Shown here piece after piece: positions 3,265-48,688 of a stretch of 64,000 nucleotides of DNA. Source of the DNA: Octopus sinensis (taxonomy: Eukaryota); contig NC_042998.1 in assembly GCF_006345805.1 (NCBI RefSeq), positions 99,262,001 to 99,326,000 of the forward strand, written 5' to 3'. A program made the translations under genes and the position numbers. How positions within the stretch are numbered: the first letter of the stretch is position 1; every line of letters starts with the position of its first letter. Below the pieces are notes generated by a model that worked only from the letters and a program-made list of their open reading frames with translations, made no database searches and was not told the origin of the DNA.

Positions 3265-3789
3265 ACTTCTTAATTTCAATGGAGGCAATGCAAGCGGAAA
3301 CTTGAGGAACATAATGAAGATCCACACTCGAAAGTCAAATACATCGTCATCATCATCATCATTATCATCATCAACCTCGTTTAACGTCCGTTTTTCATGC
3401 TAGCATGGGTTGGACAAGTACATACATATATTCAAATATTTTTCCATATTTACAAAACGGATATATAAATTCCAAATATAAAAATATATATAAATAGATA
3501 ATAATTGGTGTTATACTAAAACACAGTGAATTCACATTTAAAAGTTATAAAACATTGGTGTAATTAAAAATTTGGGATGATAAAACATTAAAAGGATGTT
3601 TTAAAATCCCCCAAAAAATAATACAAAAGTTTAAGTTCCATCTGCGGGCCGTTTCAGGGATGTGCCAAGTAATATGATATATTTCATATTTTCAAAACTA
3701 ACACTCCCTTCATCAGAATGTTTTTTACACACAATCTACAATAACAAATACAGAAATACTATTAAATACTATTTTGACTATGGGTTTTC

Positions 3790-14829: not shown

Positions 14830-15255
14830 TAACCAGCGTCTCCTTACTGGCACTTGAGCCCCGTGCTAGTAGGGGGCTAAGAGCACCATCCGAGTGTGAT
14901 CGTTGCCAGAGCAGCTAACTTGCTTCCGTGCCAGTGGCACGTAAAAGGCACCATTTGAGCATGATCGTTACCAGCATCGCCTTACTGGCACCTGTGCCGG
15001 TGGCATGTGTAAAAAGATTCAAGTGAGATCATTGCCAGTACTGCCTGACTGGTCCCCGTGCCAGTGGCACATAAAAGCACCCACTACACTCTCGGAGTGG
15101 TTGGCGTTAGGAAAGGCATCCAGCTGTAGAAACTCTGCCAGATCAAGATTGAAGCCTGGTGCAGCCATCTGGTTCACCAGCCCTCAGTCAAATCGTCCAA
15201 CCCATGCTAGCATGGAAAGCAGACGTTAAATGATGATGATGATGATGATGATGAT
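14830..15255 (+). mobile_element. RTE 3' UTR/tail repeat with VNTR. Other copies: ~1210-1290, 1850-2050, 5030-5250, 16075-16310, 19930-20140, 22950-23150, 23710-23915, 29080-29440, 41400-41752, 50985-51200, 59270-59420
   Basis: Shared gttggcgttaggaagggcatccagctgtagaaac...catggaaagcggacgttaaacgatgatgat. Confidence 0.85.
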
Positions 15256-19821: not shown

Positions 19822-20179
19822 AACTCTTTCATTAACTGAGATTAATACAACAGTAGCATAAATCTCTAGGACTTTGAGTCACTCCTATAGTATTCTCAGC
19901 AAATATAAGATTATATATATATATATATATATCATCATCATCATCATCATCGTTTAACGTCCGTTCTCCATGCAAGCATGGGTTGGACGGTTCGACCGGG
20001 GATCTGGGAAGCCAGAAGGCTGCACCAGGCTCCAGTCTTATCTGGCAATGTTTCTACACCTGGATGCCCTTCCTAACGCCAACCACTCCATGAGTGTAGT
20101 GGGTGCTTTTTACGTGCCACCTGCACAGGTGCCAGGCGAGGCTGCCCTAATAATAATAATAATAATAATAAAAATAATA

Positions 20180-20393
20180 ATCCTTTCTACTACAGGCACA
20201 AGGCCTGAAATTTTAGAGGAGAAGGAGAGTCGATCTCACTGACCCCAGTACTTGACTGGTATTTAATTTATTGACCCCGAAAGGATGAAAGATAAAATCG
20301 ACCTTGGTGGAATTTGAATCAGAACGTAAGGGCAGACAAAATGCCACCAAGCATTTTGGCCGGCATACTAACGATTCTGCCAGCTCACCGCCC
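20180..20393 (-). mobile_element. tRNA-derived SINE family A with (ATT)n tail. Copies also at 15632-15838, 28512-28727, 28731-28948, 36480-36690, 47070-47304, 49018-49224 (+) and 32020-32455, 41890-42095 (-)
   Basis: ggc.gtgagctggcagaa head, ttctgagttcaaattc B-box, gcctttcatcctttcggggtcgataaa central domain, aggccttgtgcc...gaaaggattatt end. Confidence 0.85.
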
Positions 20394-24951: not shown

Positions 24952-26713
24952 GTAAGTAAAGAAATCCATCAATGTTTAATGTATCAAGCTGAAAGTTCAC
25001 CAACTGTAGTTAATATTTTGTTGTTTTTACTTTATTGTGGGGAAGTGGACAGTGTTACTCATAATTCCTTATATCTACAATATATGAGTGTAGACATGGT
25101 TGTGTTCTTAACAAGTACACTTCACAACTACGTGCTTCTTGGTTTGATACCAAAAACTGATACATTGAACTCTAATCTATTGTAATTTCAATTTTACTAT
25201 TTGGCAGCCAAATATCTCTTAATTAACTCCAAACATATCTGTTGTGTATTTGCAACACTGTTATCAATCAGGTTTTCTGTTGTTTTTAAGAAGATATAAC
25301 ATTTTATTCAGATCAGCTCTTTAATATTTAAACTGGCCAGATCCAACCTCTCACACCAACCCTACAATGTCGTTCTTAAAATAAACAATCACTTCAGTGA
25401 AATCACAGAGCTACAAGATAATGCAGGGTTAATTCAAAACAATTTGAATAAATGAGGATTACATTTGACAGAGTAATCTGAATATTAAAGGGTTAAGTGG
25501 GCCTGTCCCCAAACTCTGTGTAAATACCATTATTGCTTGGTGAAACAACATCTAGGGAGAAACCTTATAATAAGTCTGGAGTGGAGTCCCTAAAGTACAT
25601 AGTGTTTGACTTGACATTCTTCTTGCAAGTCTTGTAGTCAGCTTGGTGCCAACCATACTGCTCTTTTGTACAGCATGCAGTCAAGAGGATGTATAGAAAT
25701 CCTGACCAACCCAGGATATCCATACACCAAGCACAGGAAATGGTTACCCTCCTATATTGGAGTGCAGCTCAAATTCTGAATAACCATTATTTCTTGAGTT
25801 AGAGGAAAACCAAAGAAAGGTAAATTTATGACATGCTTATTTGAGAGGGTTGGTCACATGAGAGTGACCTTGAGTTCAGGACTTAGACTATGCAGATATA
25901 ATGTATCCAGTACATCAAATTTGGCCATACCAACTTTACTGTGATGCAGGTTGTCCTAATATATATGACTGGTGGATCAACATTGTACAACAATAAGAAT
26001 TCAGCTGTTTCATCAACTGAATTATCTGCTCCTGAATTAATATGGAATCAGCCAAGCATCACACAAACGTAGGTACCCTTAATGTAATTTTCAGACAGAA
26101 TCATCGTGATACCAGTGTGTAGCAAGGCTGTACCTTTTGAAATACAACCCACCCAGGGGGCTTCTTTACAGTTTCTGCCTCCCAAAGTTTGCTCAAAAGT
26201 GATGGGTTAATCCTGAGGTTATAGAAACTGACACTTGCCTAAGATGCCACACAATGGAATCAAACTGAGGACCTTGAGGTTATGAAGCAAACTTCTTAAC
26301 TATCCAGTCATACTACACCTACAAAAAACTGGATGTACTATCATATTAGAGAAAAGTGGAGGTGCGTGGCTTAGTGGTTAGGGTGTTACACTCATGATCA
26401 TAAGATTGTGGTTTCGATTCCTGTACCACATTGCTCCAGTCCACTCAGCTGACAAAAATGAGTAATCCTGCACCAGACTGGCATTCCATCCAGGTGAAAA
26501 ATATATACACCATAGAATCCAGGAAACTGGCTTTATGGGCCTTTGGCTAGAGAAGACATGTTAAAAAAAGCCCCTTAGTATTTCAATGAAAATACTCATG
26601 ATGCTACATTTTAACCCATCCAAGAAAAATTCTGTGACAGCTTGCAGTTTGAACTTACATATGACTTCAGCTTCCTCACTTAATACTCATTGCTATTGCT
26701 ATTGCTATTTCAG

Positions 26714-28383: not shown

Positions 28384-29557
28384 ATATATATATATATATT
28401 TATACTGTAAAATTAGATTTAATCCTAAATCTAATTTTTCCCTGTAAGTTTGGATTTACTCCCTAATATTATTATTATATACTTATATTTATCATTATTA
28501 TCATTATTATTAGGGCAGTGAACTGGCCAAATTGTTAGAACGCTGGGCAAATGCTTAGCAGCATTTCATCCATTTTCATGTTCTGCATTCAAATTCTACC
28601 AAGGTAGACTTTGTCTTTCATCTTTTCAGGTCCAATAATTAAGTACCAGTGAAACACTGGGGTTGATGTAATGAACTAGTCCTCTCCCCTCAAATTTCAG
28701 GCCTTGTGCCTTCAGTAGAAAGGATTATTAGGGCAGTAAGCTGGCAGAATCATTAGCAGGCTAGGTAAAATGCTTAGCAGCATTTCATCCAGCTTTATGT
28801 TCAAAGTTCAAATTCTGCCACGGTCAACTCTCTCTTTTATCCATTCAGGGTCAAAAATATAAGTAACCGTTCAGCATTGGGATCAATGTGATCAACTTAA
28901 CCCCTCCCTTAAAATTGCTGACCCTGTGCCAAAATTTGAAACCATTATTGTCATTATTTTACACCCATTTTATTTTTTTGCATTATATCTCACATTCCTG
29001 AGCTTCTAGATTTTTTTCTTAATAACTAATTTTCTTAATTTAAGAATCTTTGTTTTTTTTCTTATTTTCTTGCTTGATCTTCATCATCATTTAACGTCTG
29101 CTTTCCATGCTGGTATGGGCTGGACAGTTTGACTGAAGGGTGCACCAGGCTCCGATCTGGTTAGGCAAAGTTTCTACAGCTGGATGCCCTTCCTAATGCC
29201 AACCACTCCAAGAGTGTAGTGGGTGTTATTATGTGCCACTGGCACAAGGGCCAGTCAGACAGTACTGGCATCGGCCACACTCAAATGGTGCTTTTTACAT
29301 GCCACCTGCACAGAAGCCAGTCTGGTGGCACTGGCAATGACCATGCTCAAATGGGGTTTTTTACGTGCCACCAGCACGACAGCCAGTCAGCAGCCCTGGC
29401 AACAATCATGCTCAAATGGTGCTTTTAACGTTCCACTGGCATGGGTGGTGATTATTTTTACAAATCTACTCAAGGCCAATTTGACCTTTGACTTTTAACT
29501 CTCAATACCAACTCAGCTGAATCTACCCCTAAATCAATGATACACATTCTGTCTTAA

Positions 29558-31450: not shown

Positions 31451-31710
31451 GTCAGGTCACTGCCTAGAATCGAACTCAGAATCTTGGGGTTAGTAGCCCA
31501 TGCTCTTAACCCCAAGATTCTGAGTTCGATTCCAGGCAGTGACCTGAATAATAATAATAATAATGATAACATCGAAAAATACCTTAGGAATGAGAACCCA
31601 GGTTCGAAATTTCCCCAAGATACCTGAAGAAGGCTGGAGGGTATATCAGCTGAAACATTGTTAACAACAAACAAGATGAGGACAAATATCCATCAAATGT
31701 AAATAATGTA
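31242..31710. mobile_element. ~470 bp palindrome, Penelope-like terminal sequence with a tRNA-like centre
   Basis: Arms 31242-31492 and 31507-31710 are complementary. Each carries CTGA(T/A)GA-stem-GAAAC, an (ATT)n tract and a T-arm-like ctgagttcgatt. Confidence 0.75.
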
Positions 31711-33380: not shown

Positions 33381-34141
33381 ATAGCAATGAAAGTAGATAG
33401 CAGGGCTTTTTGGTAGCTTGGAATGAAGATCAAACTGGTTAGTTTCATATTTCATTTATAACTCATTAGGAATCTCTTACTTTTGTCTTACAAGCTGCCA
33501 AAAAGAAGTATTGTAGAACTACTTATAAATATGTAAACAAGATTTTTACATGTATGCCAAGTATAACAACTTTTGCTTAATAGTACAAGGTTGATAGCTG
33601 GGCATTAATAATTAGGGTAGCAATAGTTTGAATGTATTTCTTTATACTCTTCCACTGCTGTTGTTCATTGAACAACAATAAAGCTTCAGTATTGCATTCA
33701 AAGGTTTTAGTCAATCATATCAACTCCACTACTTATTTCAGTCTGGTACTTAATTTATCAATCTCTTTTTGTTGAACTGCCGAGTTAAAAGATATAAAGA
33801 GACACATAAAAACAAATTTGTGGGGCTGGTATAAACATAAATGCACCAGTAGTGTAGTTAGAGTGTATACTGCCTAGAGTACTCCTGGCAAAACCTAAGT
33901 GAGGCTTTTTTGCATCCCTTAACCTATGCTATTAAAATACACTCAACTGAGTGCATGTATGTAGTATAGGCTTTTGTACAATTTCCACCACAGAAGCCCA
34001 TCAAGCAATAGCTGATTTGAGGCTATAGTAGAAGTTACTTTTGCACAGTGTTGTGTAATGTAATCAACTTTAGGACCATGCAAACTGGATCTCTTAACCA
34101 TACACCCACAACCTGTTCTAATGCATATATATATATATATG

Positions 34142-34184
<43 letters not shown>

Positions 34185-34251
34185 GTTACGCAATGGATAA
34201 CACGTCTGACTGCGTATCAGAAGATTCCAGGTTCGTATCCTGGTGAGCTTG
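34185..34251 (+). pseudogene. tRNA-Arg retro-pseudogene (positions 7-73, anticodon read as GCG), 5' truncated
   Basis: gttacgcaatggataacacgtctgactgcgtatcagaagattccaggttcgtatcctggtgagcttg aligns to conserved metazoan tRNA-Arg(ACG). Anticodon and T stems are intact; the acceptor 5' strand is missing. Confidence 0.88.
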
Positions 34252-34803
34252 CATTTATTTTCCGTCCAACCCGTGCTAGCACGGAAAACGGACGTTAAAC
34301 GATGATGATGATGATATATATAAAAATATTATTATTATTAATAAATAATAATAATATAAGTGGCTAGCAAGCATAAAATAACTATGAAGGTTAAATTATT
34401 AATTTATAATGAGGGTACTAGGTAGTTCCAGCATTGCTAGACATAAGAGTCAAAATGATTCAAAAACCATATTTATTACTTATACACACTAGTGAATTTG
34501 AAGAAACAAGTAAACAGAAAAGCCAACTTAAGAATAGTGAGTAAAAATGGCAAATGATTTTGCGGATGTACTCATATTATGTGATTTCGAACCCTGTGAT
34601 AAACACTTAGTTCTTGTCAATGGGTATTGTGGTTGAGAGCTAAAAATACTCATGTCACCATATGTGTATTGACCATGTGTGTATTTCTAACAATGCAGGT
34701 ACTGTCTAATACCCTGATTATATATATATATATATTGATAAAAATGGTAAGACAACAAAAGAAAGAAAGAGACCTTGATATTATGTAAATAGAGGAATTT
34801 ATG

Positions 34804-41206: not shown

Positions 41207-41862
41207 GTGTGCTACTTCAAGTGGTAATCCATGGACCGGTGCTGGTTCATGGACTGGCACCAGTCCATGAGCCATCTGCTGCTGGTAAGCAGCAAGTTTC
41301 CAGAAAAGAAAGAAATATTATAAAATGCTTATGTAATATTGTATTATATGTTTACAAAATAAATATACGATAAAAATACTTGTCAACTTTTATTATATTC
41401 ATTGACTGGCTTCCATGCCGGTGGCACAAAAATGCTGGTGGCGCATCAAAAAACGTTCGAGTGAGGTTGTTGCCAGTACCGCTGGACTGGCTCCTGTGCG
41501 GGTGGCACGTAAAAAACACCATTTGAGCATGACCGTTGGCAGTACTGCCTGACTGGCCCTTGTGCTGGTGGCACGTAAAACCACCCATACACTCTCGGAA
41601 TGGTTGGCGTTAGGAAGGGCATCCAACTGTAGAAACTCTGCCAGATCAGATTGGAGCCTGGTGCAGCCGTCTGGTTTGCCAGTCCTCAGACAAATCGTCC
41701 AACCCATGCTAGCTTGGAAAGCGGACATTAAACGATGATGATGATGATGATGTTTCTGGTATAAATTGATGTTACTAAGAAATATTACCAGTCTCTGGCA
41801 CAGGCACATTGGAAAAAAAAATAACTGCCGGTATGCCACATCAGATTGTTTGAGAAGCACTG
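41207..41862. mobile_element. hAT (Charlie-like) MITE remnant with nested RTE-tail insertion
   Basis: Left end gtgctacttcaagtgg...ggaccggtgc; right end gtttgagaagcactg. No clear TSD. Confidence 0.55.
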
Positions 41863-43029: not shown

Positions 43030-43800
43030 ATGATATCATTATCATCACCATTTAATGTCTGCTTTCCATGCTAGCAGGGGTTGGACGATTTGACTGAGGA
43101 TCAGCGAACCAGATGGCAGAGTTTCCACGGCAGGATGCCCTTCCCGATGCCAACCACTTTGAGAATGTATTGGGTGCTTTTATGTACCACCGGCACGAAG
43201 GCCAGTCAGGCGGTACTAGCAAAAGCCATGCTCAAAAAGTGTTTTTTATGTGTCACCTGCACAGGAGCCAGTCCAGCAGCACTGGCAACAACCTCACTCG
43301 AATGTTTAATCACATGCCAGTAAGGCGATGCTGGTAGCAATCACGCTTGAATGGTGCTTTTTATGTGCCACTGGCACGGAAGCCAGATGATCCTCAGATG
43401 GTGCTCTTAGCGCTCCACTAGCATGGATGCCAGTCATTGGATTTGATTTTGATTTCACTTGCCTCAACAGGTCTTTGCAAGCAGAGTTTAGTGTCCAATG
43501 AAGGAAAGATACACATAAGTGGGCTGGTTACACTCCTGGCATAGGCCACGAGGTTATGGTCTCACTTGGCTTGCCGGGTCTTCTCAAGCACAACATATTT
43601 CCAAAGGTCTCAGTCACTAGTCATTGCCTCGGTGAGGCCTAATGTTCGAAGGTCATGCTTCATCATTTCATCCCAGGTCTTCCTGTGTCTACCTCTTCCA
43701 CAGGTTCCCTCAACCACTAGGGTGTGACACTTTTTCACACAGCTATCCTCATCCATTCTTGCCACATGACCATACCAGCGCAGCCGGCTCATTATTGTTT
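43030..43800 (-). mobile_element. RTE-clade LINE 3' end: ORF C-terminus, VNTR-containing 3' UTR and (GAT)n tail
   Basis: RLRWYGHVARM...GRGRHRKTW is contiguous with ~60 bp gtgcc.gtggcac units and the tail ggaaagcagacattaaatggtgatg. Confidence 0.85.
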
Positions 43801-45712
43801 TAGGCACCAGACTTCTGTAACTGTTTTGGCAGGATTTTTACATCTGGATGCCCTTCCTAACACCAACCACTCAACAAAGTGGACTCAGTGCTTTATACGT
43901 GGCACAAGCACAGGTGAGGTCATTTTTGGCAAGGTTTTTACAGCTGGATGCCCTTCCACACACCAATCACTTTACAGTGTGGACTGGATGCTTTTTAAGT
44001 GGCACCTGCACTGACAGGGTCACCAAGTACCTTGCAACACAAAAACAAAATCTTTTGAGAGGGGAGGAGGCATTGGAGGAGGTAATCTTGTGCCAGATGA
44101 TGAAGCCTTGAGTGTCTTGCTGTAGAGGAGGTACAAGATTATCCAGCCAAAGGCAGAGAGAGAGAGAGAGAGAGATCAGGAATGAAGATAGAAACCGGTA
44201 TGCTACCACAAAGGAGATATATGGTTACCCAACCTGAGGGAAGTGCAGGAGAAGGAGAGAGAAATTGAAAGACAGCAGGATAGAGATGGTGGCAAAGTGC
44301 CAGGCATGCTCACAAGGGACTGGGATTAGAACATAAATGGGATGGTCGAGTAATGGAAGAGAGATATACAGATGGCAGTAAGTGCCAGGGCATACCCTTG
44401 AGATTTGAAGGTCATAATATAAATGCAGGATATTGCCAAAGAAGCATGATTAGATAACATGATAAGGAATGTAATATTTATATATGTATATGTGTGTGTG
44501 TGTGTGTGTACCTTTGTTTAGATAGCATGTGATGGTTGTAAATGAGCATTATCTTCATATAAGCCAGGTTGTTAGTTTCCAGTCTTCCATGTTTTACCAT
44601 GGAGGAAATATTAACTTGCTTGGAAACATGTGAAGGTTGGTGACAGGAAAGGCATCCAACAGTAAAAAATCTGTCCCAATAAATTCCATGCAACCCATGC
44701 ATGGTTAAAAAGTAGGTGTTAAAATGATGATGATGATGATGATGACAATGATGATGATATGCTACCAAGAAGGATTATCAGGGAAGACTGTAAACATAGA
44801 CACACACACACATATCCCTTTTATATTTTGTGTTAAAATTCCATTCAGGTCAGTTTTGCCTTTTTTCTTCCAGAATTGATAAAATAAATACTTGACAAAA
44901 TACTTGGGTTTTACATAACCAATTAAAAACTTCAAAGGTAGTTCCATCAAGATGTTCACTAGCCAAAAACTGAAAGTAGTAAAAAAAGAAATTAAAAGAA
45001 AATAGTGGCACTTTAGTATTAACTTGATCATAACAATTTCATGTTTCTAACATCTTCATATCACAATATAAGAACTATAGGTAGAAGACTGAAGTCTGTT
45101 GCAATTTTTGATGCACAAAATTTTTTATTTTTTTCATACACAAAAACAAATATAGTTGTTACTATGATTGACAAAATGTCATGAGAGTTTGGAGATAATA
45201 GTTTTGGGGTTGATGTGGCTGAAGCAGCAGTCAAAAGGTTGACTGCTGGTTATTGTGTTACAGTTACCTATTGTTCATTAGCTTGTGGTGTCAGCTGCTG
45301 CTCTGCTACTGTCTCCTGTGTCCAGTCTGATGTCTCCTCTTCACTGTCTCACATGCTAAATGCTAAGCTGTCTCTCAATGCTCTCTATTTTGTAGTGTGC
45401 TGAATTTATGCTGCTAGGTAGGCTCAAAGAGAAAGGTGCAAAAAGTTGGTACTGTTGCTGGAGCCAGTTTCATGTGAAGTCATGAATGGCCAAATTTTGT
45501 TGATTATGCGAGTAATATTTTAGTAAATTGCAACATCAGGTGATTGTTGAATATTCCTGCTACAGGACCATTATTGTTCTTTAGTGAGACAAGACTTCTT
45601 TGTTATCTAGTAAATCAGCATTATCTGTGAAAAATGTAACAATTTTGTAAATAAATTATAAAGAAAGACCATCCACATGTTTGATATATTTTTTATTTTT
45701 CATTCAATTCAG

Positions 45713-46309: not shown

Positions 46310-46780
46310 TTTTGATTTTGATTGTGATTTCACTTGCCTCAACAGGTCTTCACAGACAACACATAAGTAGGTTGGTTACACCGCTGGCATAGGCCACGGG
46401 TTATGGTCTCACTTGGTTTGTCGGGTTCTCTCAAGCACAGCATATTTCCAAAGGTCTTGGTCGCTAGTCATTGCCTTGGTGAGGCCTTATGTTCAAAGGT
46501 CATACTTCACCACCTCATCCCAGGTCTTCCTGGGTCTACCTCTTCCACAGGTTCCCTCAACCGCTAGGGTATGGTACTTTTTCACACAGCTATCCTCATC
46601 CATTCGCACCACATGTCCGTACCAGTGCAGTCATATCTCATGCACACAACATCTGATGCTTCTTAGGTCTAACTTTTCTCTCAAGGCACTTACACTCTGT
46701 CGTGTATGCACACTGACATTACACATCCAGCGGAGCATACTGGCTTCATTCCTTGCAAACTTAATCATGTCCTCAGGCAG
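46310..46780 (-). mobile_element. RTE LINE fragment of the same family as 43440-43800
   Basis: DNA similarity to 43440-43800; LRWYGHV/GRGRPRKTW-type coding remnant. Confidence 0.8.
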
Positions 46781-47311
46781 AGTGAACCAGGATTTTTGTG
46801 TGGGGTTTACCTCAGATTACCTTAAGTGAACTGCCCCATTATTGGGAAATCTATTTATTTATATATTATCTATTTCTCTACTTTCTATTATATATCCTCT
46901 GTTATATCCTCTAATGTGGTAGTATCTCTCTTTGATTGATGTTAACCCCACATGTTTTTGTGTAATTTCTTTTGTGCTGTAACTCATTCTGCGATATTGT
47001 CCTCCATGTCTTGGGCTCTTGTGGCCAATAAAAGAAATCATTATTATTATTATCATTATTATTTTTATTAAGGTGGTGAGCTGGCAGAATTGTCAGCATG
47101 CTGGGGTAAATGTTTAGCAGCATTTCATCCATCTTTATGTTCTGAGTTCAAATTCTATCAAAGTAAACTTTGCCTTTCATCCTTTCAGGGTCAATAAATT
47201 TAGCACTAGTCAAGTACTGGGGTCGATGTAATTGACTTTCCTCCTCCCCCAAAATTTCAGGCCTTGTGCCATTAGTAGAAAGGATTATTATTATTATTAT
47301 TATTAATTAGC

Positions 47312-48442
47312 AGTCTTATTTTTATCATGTGCTTTCACTGCACTAATGAGCGCAGCTCTGTATGCCTCGGGTATGTGCTGTGGTTTGTTGTGATGCTGTT
47401 ATTTTCACTGTATTGGAAGTGTTTTAGGCGTGCAGTGCCTAGTAGTGCTATTTTCTCTATGTTATATATACTTGTAGCCCTGGTGTTTTTGTTATGTATT
47501 TGTCCGAATGTTTTTTATCATACCTAATGCACCTACTATGATAGGAATTGTTTCTATTTTTAGGCTCCACATTCATGTTACCTCTATTTCCAGATCTTTG
47601 TACTTTGAAAGTTTCTCCATTTCTTTTAGAGAAACATTGTCACCTGTTGGTATTGATACATTGATGAGAAAGCATTCTTTTCTTGGTATTTTCATATTTG
47701 TCACCTTCCTTAAAGACAGAAAACAGTTTTTTGTTTTGTTCATGTTTTGTAGCTATTTGTATTAGTTTTCCTTGCTTCTGAAGTAGATATTTCTGTAGTC
47801 CAATGGTGGTGTTTTATAATAGATCTATAGCTGTATAAGGCCTCTACCACCTTTGATACATTGTATATACAGCCTTTCTATTTTGGGTGGTGCATCCTAG
47901 CATATAGCCTTTCAGATTTTGGGTGGTGCATTCTAAATCCTGTCATTATTTTTCTTGTTTTCCTGTCTAGAGTGTTGATATCTATTATCTTGTTTTTCTC
48001 ATTGAGCTGTTTTCATTATTGATCTAACTTATCTATAGTATTCCTTTCTTATCTTCTCTTTCATTTGTGTGTGTTGTATTGTATCTAGCTCATTCATTCC
48101 TAAGTATTTGTATATCTGGCTTTGGTCTAATTTTTGTATTTCATTTGTTTTATCTAGAGTGCTATTGTTACTCTTAACTAGTTTCCTCTTTTCAGGGTTG
48201 CTTTGAGACATTTTTCTAAGCCAAATTGCATGTTTATTTTTTTGGTAAATCCATGTACTATCTGTAGTAATGTTTCCAGCTGTTTAGCATTTGTAGCATA
48301 CAGTTTTAGATTATCCAGATACAAGAGATGGTTGATTGCTTTGCCATAACAGTTGTATCCACATCCAATTCTATTTAGCATGTCAGCTAAAGGTGTCAGT
48401 GCCAAGCAGAAAAGGAGTGGAGAGAGCGTGTCTCCTTGAAAT
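47312..48442 (-). mobile_element. R4/Dong-like non-LTR retrotransposon, internally deleted (RT plus end of RLE endonuclease)
   Basis: FQGDTLSPLLF, HLLYLDNLKLYA, FGLEKC, YKYLG, GGRGL, then a junction near 47690 to KLSKYKDLEIE...GALG...IALLGTA. Confidence 0.88.
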
Positions 48443-48454
48443 ATTATTATTATT

Positions 48455-48688
48455 AGAAAAAAACTCTCAGCTTATTTTGCTAGGCATTGTGGAAAGTGTC
48501 TGCTGTCAACAACCAGCAGACTAAGGTGACACTTGTTTACTGGTCATGCTTCAAGAACCCTGCAGAGAACTCTTGCAGTTCCAAGCAATAATGATTTTTG
48601 TAGGTTTTCTATTTTCACATTTGTACCAATCTTTTTGAGCTATGTTGATAGTTGAATGATGATACTTCCAAATGTGCCAATCACTATC
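48455..48688 (-). mobile_element. R4/Dong-like 3' fragment of a different subfamily
   Basis: C-terminal LQKSLLLGTARVLCRVLEA* followed by a 3' UTR. Confidence 0.7.

Follow-up and report, generated by a model that had tools for sequence, protein, structure and literature searches.

SINEs that combine a tRNA-derived head with a LINE-derived tail were reportedly described by Ohshima and Okada in 1994. They include the OR1 and OR2 CORE-SINEs of Octopus (PMC4758252, PMC4824008). Template switching by LINE machineries has also placed other small RNAs in front of a retrotransposon end in mammals: this is the origin given to the U6/L1 and other small-RNA/L1 chimeras of Buzdin et al., as far as they are summarised in PMC4758252. 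In the platypus, as far as PMC5322556 recounts the work of Schmitz et al. 2008, the snoRTE family joins a snoRNA to an RTE 3' end and has reached about 40,000 copies. Therian mammals further hold LINE-made tRNA retrocopies without a tail, the tailless tRNA retropseudogenes (PMC5322556). Finally, tRNA sequencing has shown that mutations in the cDNA of type I tRNAs cluster at m1G9, m2,2G26, I34, m1G37 and m1A58 (PMC5066629; PMC8062790).

Here we describe a locus of Octopus sinensis that touches on all of these systems. It lies in a window of 64 kb, by which we mean the whole stretch of DNA that was analysed, and consists of a TA-rich block, a tRNA-like sequence (34185-34251), a linker (34252-34261), a retrotransposon tail (34262-34315) and the heptamer ATATATA, in this order. 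To judge by its sequence, the locus might be a one-off chimeric retrocopy, produced in the Octopus germ line by a single event of target-primed reverse transcription with a template switch and recording the modifications of the tRNA that was copied, a reading to which we give an even chance.

Like the U6/L1 chimeras, the locus is built of two parts that share one orientation and one set of flanks: the 3' part matches the 3' end of a retrotransposon RNA, and the 5' part matches a small pol III RNA of the nucleus, whose own 3' end forms the junction (the U-run in U6, T4 here). Unlike them, it involves a tRNA, a cephalopod host, and a hairpin with a (GAT)n end instead of poly(A), and the RNA copied carries many modifications, which seemingly left substitutions. 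It shares with snoRTE the position of a small non-coding RNA ahead of a LINE 3' tail, an arrangement that makes the transcript a template for retroposition, but snoRTE is a proven high-copy family, whereas this locus was seen in one copy and is seemingly non-functional (T4, damaged A and B boxes). As in tRNA-derived SINEs, a tRNA-related head precedes a tail common to a partner LINE; unlike OR1 and OR2, the locus lacks a CORE or body domain, and its head is about 90% tRNA-like, against 60-68% for the CORE-SINE-like heads of our sample. The tailless tRNA retropseudogenes are also tRNA retrocopies made by LINEs, but they are 3'-truncated and have no tail, whereas the locus is 5'-truncated and has a LINE/SINE tail (PMC5322556). 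The resemblance to the signatures of DM-tRNA-seq and mim-tRNAseq concerns positions 9, 34, 37 and 58, the reading of inosine as G, the mismatches to T, and the stop 5' of m1G9 (PMC5066629; PMC8062790). These signatures come from laboratory cDNA made by known enzymes, whereas the locus would be an in vivo LINE cDNA fixed in a genome, and it is missing the usual m2,2G26 signal.

Layout of the locus

The features of the locus, with the evidence for each, are the following (strand is given where one applies).

34125..34184: upstream microsatellite block made of (AT)15, (TG)9.5 (about 9) and (TA)6; TRF and sequence
34185..34251, plus strand: retrocopy of tRNA-Arg(ACG) positions 7-73, without positions 1-6 and with anticodon GCG; Rfam, nhmmer and identity
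34187..34188, plus strand: positions 9 (G>T) and 10 (G>A), adjoining the 5' end of the copy, where m1G9 and m2G10 are expected; alignment
34202..34202, plus strand: position 24, changed from G to A by a CpG-type transition, which disrupts the C11-G24 pair; alignment
34204..34204, plus strand: position 26, G as in the references, the expected m2,2G26 signature being missing; alignment
34212..34212, plus strand: position 34, A>G, the base that reverse transcriptases read from inosine; alignment
34215..34215, plus strand: position 37, G>T, where m1G37 is expected; alignment
34236..34237, plus strand: position 58, A>T, where m1A58 is expected (B box broken), and position 59, which is A; alignment
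34252..34261, plus strand: linker CATTTATTTT (CA followed by TTTATTTT), 10 nt; sequence
34262..34300, plus strand: unique portion of the retrotransposon 3' tail, a two-stem hairpin; fold, covariation and further copies
34301..34315, plus strand: (GAT)5 microsatellite closing the tail, where priming of the reverse transcriptase would occur; TRF
34316..34322: ATATATA immediately 3' of the element, perhaps the other copy of a duplicated target site made of TA repeats; sequence

The head reads GTTACGCAATGGATAACACGTCTGACTGCGTATCAGAAGATTCCAGGTTCGTATCCTGGTGAGCTTG (34185-34251), and the tail reads CCGTCCAACCCGTGCTAGCACGGAAAACGGACGTTAAAC followed by (GAT)5 (34262-34315, 54 nt). The upstream block (34125..34184) may be the target-site side of an insertion, its final TA repeats being one copy of the duplicated target site. 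TA repeats are present on both sides of the combined head and tail, none separates the two, and a duplication is here indistinguishable from the repeat itself. The simplest account of this arrangement would be that head and tail entered a TA tract as one insertion. An earlier note on this DNA had described a tRNA copy and a retrotransposon 3' tail as one unit bracketed by TA repeats, and the sequence is as described. Its statement that the whole lies inside a (TA)n tract holds for the 5' flank, which is a real (TA)n, and fails for the 3' flank, which is only (AT)3A, short of the (TA)4 rule of our flank count; the DNA past this heptamer is A/T-rich. By this count, 8 of the 48 tails have (TA)4 or longer just 3' of them, as compared with 4.9% of the background windows of 45 nt (P=0.002). 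The window is AT-rich (34% G+C) and strongly depleted in CpG (observed/expected 0.21).

The tRNA-derived head

Against the Rfam tRNA model the head scores 22.9 bits (gathering score 29, E=0.004) and is flagged as 5'-truncated, and against two genuine tRNA-Arg(ACG) sequences nhmmer gives E=9e-16. These two references, both from species other than the host, are the mouse tRNA-Arg-ACG printed in PMC7757669 and a tRNA-Arg(acg) called by ARAGORN on the minus strand of a 1.1-kb marine-metagenome contig (L005:486-558), which was found through an ORF lying antisense over this genuine gene. The contig holds tRNAs for Ala(AGC), Arg(ACG) and Ala(AGC) at 71-142, 486-558 and 967-1039, and looks like a eukaryotic tRNA gene cluster of some plankton organism.

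The identity of the head to both references is 90-91%, while the SINE heads found elsewhere in our sample, including CORE-SINE-like ones, are about 60-68% identical to tRNA-Arg; the head is thus a near-pristine tRNA copy and not an old SINE head. From position 8 to 65 the mouse and L005 sequences are identical save at position 59, where the head has A, as L005 does, and over this range the head differs from both only at positions 9, 10, 24, 34, 37 and 58. The changes G9>T, G10>A, G24>A, A34>G, G37>T and A58>T, which the earlier note had listed against the conserved metazoan tRNA-Arg(ACG) sequence, reappear exactly in the comparisons with mouse and with L005. In the acceptor arm, where the head also differs at 67 and 68, the two references are themselves discordant at 67 and 70, so that this arm is unscorable.

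The head does not have the marks of a working tRNA gene. ARAGORN called no tRNA gene in the window, no Rfam family reached its gathering score there, and the head carries T at positions 37 and 58. Working tRNAs are not known to have a pyrimidine at 37 or a base other than A at 58. The head, with T at both sites, therefore cannot be a true copy of a working gene.

The retrotransposon tail

The tail folds into a hairpin with an outer stem CGUCC/GGACG, an inner stem CCGUG/CACGG and a loop CUAG (-13.3 kcal/mol, z=-2.4), and its pairing is kept in 92% of cells across 36 distinct copies, against 24-43% when the partners are slid. A BLAST search of the element within the window returned 17 further copies of its last 54 nt, whereas its first 77 nt occur only at the locus. 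We extended the count to about 186 kb of Octopus DNA, made of the 64-kb window and six 20-kb loci of O. vulgaris obtained via SINE-derived proteins. This sample holds 48 tails (47 besides the one at the locus, with 75-95% identity) and a single head. Nearly all the other tails terminate one abundant SINE, the commonest of the sample, and all copies finish in (GAT)n-like repeats.

The tail at the locus is the CCCGTGCTAGCACGG variant. Among 37 aligned copies, non-octopus ones included, the hairpin pair 12-21 is A-U in 28, G.U in five, and G-C solely at the locus, so that the template of the tail was not among the common SINE masters. Outside this one pair, in which the change is compensated, the tail agrees with the majority consensus of the alignment. 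We considered whether it is merely an undecayed copy, and rejected this since the C at column 21 is unique in the alignment. The CpG sites scored are kept in three of three cases, against a mean of 61% in the other copies. The description of the tail as CpG-intact in the earlier note is too simple, given its singular G-C pair. The retained CpGs and the match to the consensus make heavy decay after insertion an unlikely cause of the 10% divergence of the head.

The same tail is also found in bare, tail-only insertions of 42-52 nt, one in the window (3364-3415, minus strand) and one in an O. vulgaris locus (L004 11545-11586, plus strand), the latter within (TA)n. Judging by such copies, the machinery often stops after copying the hairpin alone, and extreme 5' truncation is normal for it. 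No LINE bearing this tail was present in the window or in the sampled loci, and either a LINE RNA or a SINE RNA could have served as the template for the tail. The earlier note had assigned the tail to RTE. Octopus RTE elements end in microsatellites (PMC9115989), a microsatellite 3' end is present here too, (GAT)5 at the locus and (GAT)n in all copies, and RTE is at most a plausible label. Outside the Octopus sample, one metagenome-derived contig (L003, animal DNA in a MAG contig) has the tail running on from the end of a LINE-like ORF, ..ARDRTIWRGL..NRPTRASMEKWTLNRQ and a stop in our own reading of the frame, a continuity that would account for the conservation of the tail.

In all, three contigs deposited as bacterial MAGs contain the tail (L001 1232-1286, L002 1-54 and L003 1937-1992), the MAGs being assigned to Caldilinea, a gammaproteobacterium and Prolixibacteraceae. 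They look like animal contamination. L001 holds a SINE-like core with the tail, from a non-octopus animal, and in L002 the tail lies right at one end of a GC-rich contig of bacterial DNA, a placement suggestive of chimeric assembly or of contamination by the host. The tail pattern matched no contig of the viral collection, the G-C variant was not found in the metagenome collection, and the tail sequence gave only chance matches in the full texts of papers.

Several other repeats surround the locus. The dominant repeat of the window is one SINE family, of which the 64 kb hold at least 17 tails (copies at 14864-15246 and 41366-41748 on the plus strand, 43035-43440, 29077-29455 and 19937-20180 on the minus strand, and about 12 more). 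It has a conserved core, GGAGTGGTTGGCGTTAGGAAGGGCATCCAGCTGTAGAAAC, which we take to resemble the Nin-DC domain, and contains tandem modules of about 60-65 nt, whose number varies (..GGCACGTAAAAAGCACCATTTGAGCATGATCGTTGCCAGTACTGCCTGACTGG..). A SINE-derived ORF of the window matches only hypothetical proteins of Octopus vulgaris and O. bimaculoides. In O. vulgaris (OX597840.1; L004 3682-4420) the last 137 nt of this SINE form six tandem copies, 137 bp apart, each unit comprising the end of the core, the tail and the GAT repeat, so that amplification of a SINE 3' end has here produced a short array resembling a satellite. The window also contains two remnants of a LINE ORF2 C-terminus that are 83% identical (43613-43837 and 46342-46816, both on the minus strand; ..RLRWYGHVARMDEDSCVKK..GRGRHRKTWDE..). 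Both end in GAAATCAAAATCAAA, unlike the tail studied here, and with this different end they were rejected as the partner LINE. A separate reverse-transcriptase fragment, FQGDTLSPLLF..YLDNLKLYA, lies at 48181-48471 on the minus strand. tRNA-headed SINEs with a CORE-like segment (..TTGAGCAAACCACTTCATTTCACGTTGCTCCAGTTCACTCAGCTG..) occur in the window (26360-26560, plus strand) and in two O. vulgaris loci (L007 8425-8960 and L004 2566-2860), and probably belong to the published OR1 and OR2 families. A third tRNA-headed SINE, GGGCATATGGCGTAGTGGTTAAGAG..GATTCTGAGTTCGATTCCAGGCAGTGACCTGAATAAT.., occurs at 31456-31620 of the window and at L007 12196-12560; its copy in the window has an inverted duplication of the head and (ATT)n/(AAT)n flanks, reminiscent of twin priming.

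Copy number and SINE status

The earlier note had proposed to count the copies with this exact junction of head and tail, and there is one in the approximately 186 kb sampled. Beyond Octopus, exact-pattern scans of metagenome, prokaryote-genome and viral collections did not retrieve the combination of head and tail. The plus frame of the element gave no candidates in a collection of 5.8 billion proteins, and the other five frames, concatenated and searched against the same collection, gave as sole match the ORF antisense over the L005 tRNA-Arg gene. Exact look-up of two ORFs of the window returned no record.

Could the element nevertheless be an active SINE? The pol III promoter elements speak against it: positions 9 and 10 of the A box and A58 of the B box are changed (these positions follow the general A- and B-box consensus), nucleotides 1-6 are missing, and TTTT precedes the tail. 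The CORE domain is absent, only the 10-nt linker standing between head and tail. Two relations to known SINEs were rejected. An OR1/OR2 origin of the head was discarded because the CORE domain is lacking and the heads of those families differ strongly from this one. Derivation of the element from the main SINE by internal deletion was discarded because nothing else in the window, copies of the main SINE included, resembles the head. The layout agrees with the design of a new SINE proposed in the earlier note, but both boxes are damaged, T4 separates the parts, and the sampled 186 kb or so hold no second copy. With nucleotides 1-6 missing, the boxes damaged and T4 ahead of the tail, we regard the product as a chimera that was probably dead on arrival, not as a working new SINE.

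The alternative that survives best, which we still hold to be unlikely, is that the locus is a 5'-truncated copy of a multi-copy simple SINE made of a tRNA-Arg head, a linker and a LINE tail, whose founder was already substituted, so that any modification footprint would date to the origin of the family. A head followed by a tail is the standard plan of a SINE, Octopus genomes are rich in SINEs with this same tail, among which 5' truncation is common, and a sample of 186 kb, when the whole genome measures a few Gb, is compatible with up to thousands of copies. However, neither the window and the six O. vulgaris loci nor six-frame translated searches contain a second copy, and the T4 between head and tail, together with A58T and G10A in the pol III boxes, would cripple a master copy. 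The head also resembles a genuine tRNA far more closely than does the head of any established Octopus SINE in the sample.

Linker and form of the template

Following the discriminator base G73, the locus reads CATTTATTTT, with TTTT at 34258-34261, and not CCA. Homology to the other copies of the tail begins exactly at 34262, right after T4. In U6/L1 chimeras, too, the junction falls on the U-run of a pol III transcript from the nucleus. The genuine tRNA-Arg gene of L005 has the trailer ATTCTTTTT, and by comparison the linker looks like the 3' trailer of a tRNA gene ending in the T4 terminator of pol III. Because the junction reads like a trailer ending in T4, a pre-tRNA template would be more economical than a CCA-ended tRNA, and we favour it over a mature tRNA. 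The mature template put forward in the earlier note is not supported by the bases found after G73, which are comparable to those of the L005 trailer.

We consider it quite improbable that the template was a mature, CCA-ended tRNA from which one C was lost, with eight T-rich bases that were untemplated or came from 3' uridylation at the jump. This account has in its favour that CA stands directly after G73. Non-LTR reverse transcriptases are generally known to add extra bases at template jumps, which also fits it. It demands two ad hoc events, the deletion of C and the addition of 8 nt, where the trailer needs none, and it leaves the T4 of the linker exactly at the junction, like the end of a pol III transcript and like the L005 trailer. 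The timing of modification gives it some weight: the mature form is the most fully modified and suits m1G37 (PMC4446420). In human cells I34 is already found on trailer-bearing precursors, while m1G37 is preferentially added by Trm5 after end-trimming, a preference that is slightly awkward for the trailer-bearing template that we favour (PMC4446420).

Substitutions at modified positions

We take the modified bases at positions 9 and 10 of tRNA-Arg to be m1G9 and m2G10. Of six differences in the body of the head, four fall on the set {9, 26, 34, 37, 58} (hypergeometric P=1.7e-4 over 58 positions, for a single locus whose pattern was noticed before testing). The enrichment gives P=6e-4 when the boundary positions 9 and 10 are left out, and P=3e-3 when the acceptor arm is counted as well, the least favourable way of scoring. 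The changes at these sites are A34>G and three changes to T, at 9, 37 and 58. The substitutions claimed to mark modified bases are therefore concentrated on known signature sites of reverse transcription, with the expected base changes, and the suggested comparison with tRNA-seq misincorporation profiles gave the same positions 9, 34, 37 and 58 and matching changes. In these profiles I34 is read as G at about 100% (PMC8062790; PMC5066629), the mismatches made by retroviral-type reverse transcriptases are mostly T (PMC8062790), the mutation peak at position 37 is attributed to m1G37, and m1A58 is present in 46 of 47 human isoacceptors (PMC5066629). Reverse transcriptases also stop at nt 4-7, which is partly linked to m1G9, and the 5' end of the copy at nt 7 is within this range (PMC5066629). 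On this evidence the head probably records tRNA modifications.

Two observations weigh on the other side. First, G26 (34204) is unaltered, although m2,2G26 is nearly always fully modified and causes misincorporation (PMC8062790; PMC5066629). This counts against the footprint and does not agree with the fully modified template of the earlier note. Second, G10>A and G24>A have no strong signature modification to account for them, position 24 not being a known signature site. The literature that we searched, with incomplete coverage, contained no report of modification footprints in genomic tRNA retrocopies.

It is likewise improbable, in our estimate, that there is no footprint at all, the head being a decayed tRNA pseudogene or an ordinary retrocopy with random mutations, and the tail perhaps a separate tail-only insertion alongside: such bare tails exist (window 3364-3415; L004 11545-11586), G10>A and G24>A are ordinary transitions and G26 is unaltered, the pattern is post hoc at a single locus, and decay is active at a CpG observed/expected ratio of 0.21 in the window, but the positional coincidence has P = 2e-4 to 3e-3 by several counts, before the base changes are considered, the near-consensus tail with three of three CpGs, against a mean of 61%, argues against heavy decay, and the TA repeats stand outside head and tail with none between them.

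Discussion

A chimeric retrocopy made in one round of target-primed reverse transcription, the reading that we prefer, would have involved 1) nicking of a (TA)n tract by a LINE endonuclease/reverse transcriptase; 2) priming on the (GAU)n end of an RNA with the hairpin tail, the tail being identified by homology and its carrier presumably a LINE or a SINE RNA; 3) after 54 nt, a jump onto a nuclear transcript of tRNA-Arg(ACG) at its 3' end, most likely, to judge by the junction, a transcript with a 3' trailer ending in the pol III U-run, CAUUUAUUUU; 4) the reading of inosine-34 as G and the insertion of A opposite m1A58, m1G37 and m1G9, which are blocked on their Watson-Crick face, giving T in the sense strand, until synthesis would have stopped at nt 7, just beyond m1G9; and 5) joining of the cDNA end inside the TA repeat. 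The more specific claim, that a LINE reverse transcriptase in an octopus germ-line nucleus wrote inosine-34, m1G37, m1A58 and m1G9 of a probably trailer-bearing tRNA-Arg into DNA, is one to which we assign slightly less than an even chance.

The favoured account of how SINEs are born begins with a template switch in which a small RNA takes over from a LINE tail, a step that is rarely witnessed. A near-unaltered tRNA joined to the tail of a partner would be a case of this step caught in the act, in a genome with a large expansion of SINEs. The pattern at this locus suggests that genomic retrocopies retain the modification signatures known from tRNA sequencing. This could be put to computational use across species, to reveal which tRNA positions were modified in the germ cells of extinct lineages, whether precursor or mature tRNAs were captured, and what LINE reverse transcriptases do on meeting m1A, m1G, m2,2G and inosine. 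If the reading is true, tRNA/tail chimeras in SINE-rich genomes would be a readable archive of past states of tRNA modification, and the same chimeras would reveal the in vivo behaviour of LINE enzymes at modified bases and capture the first step of the birth of a SINE.
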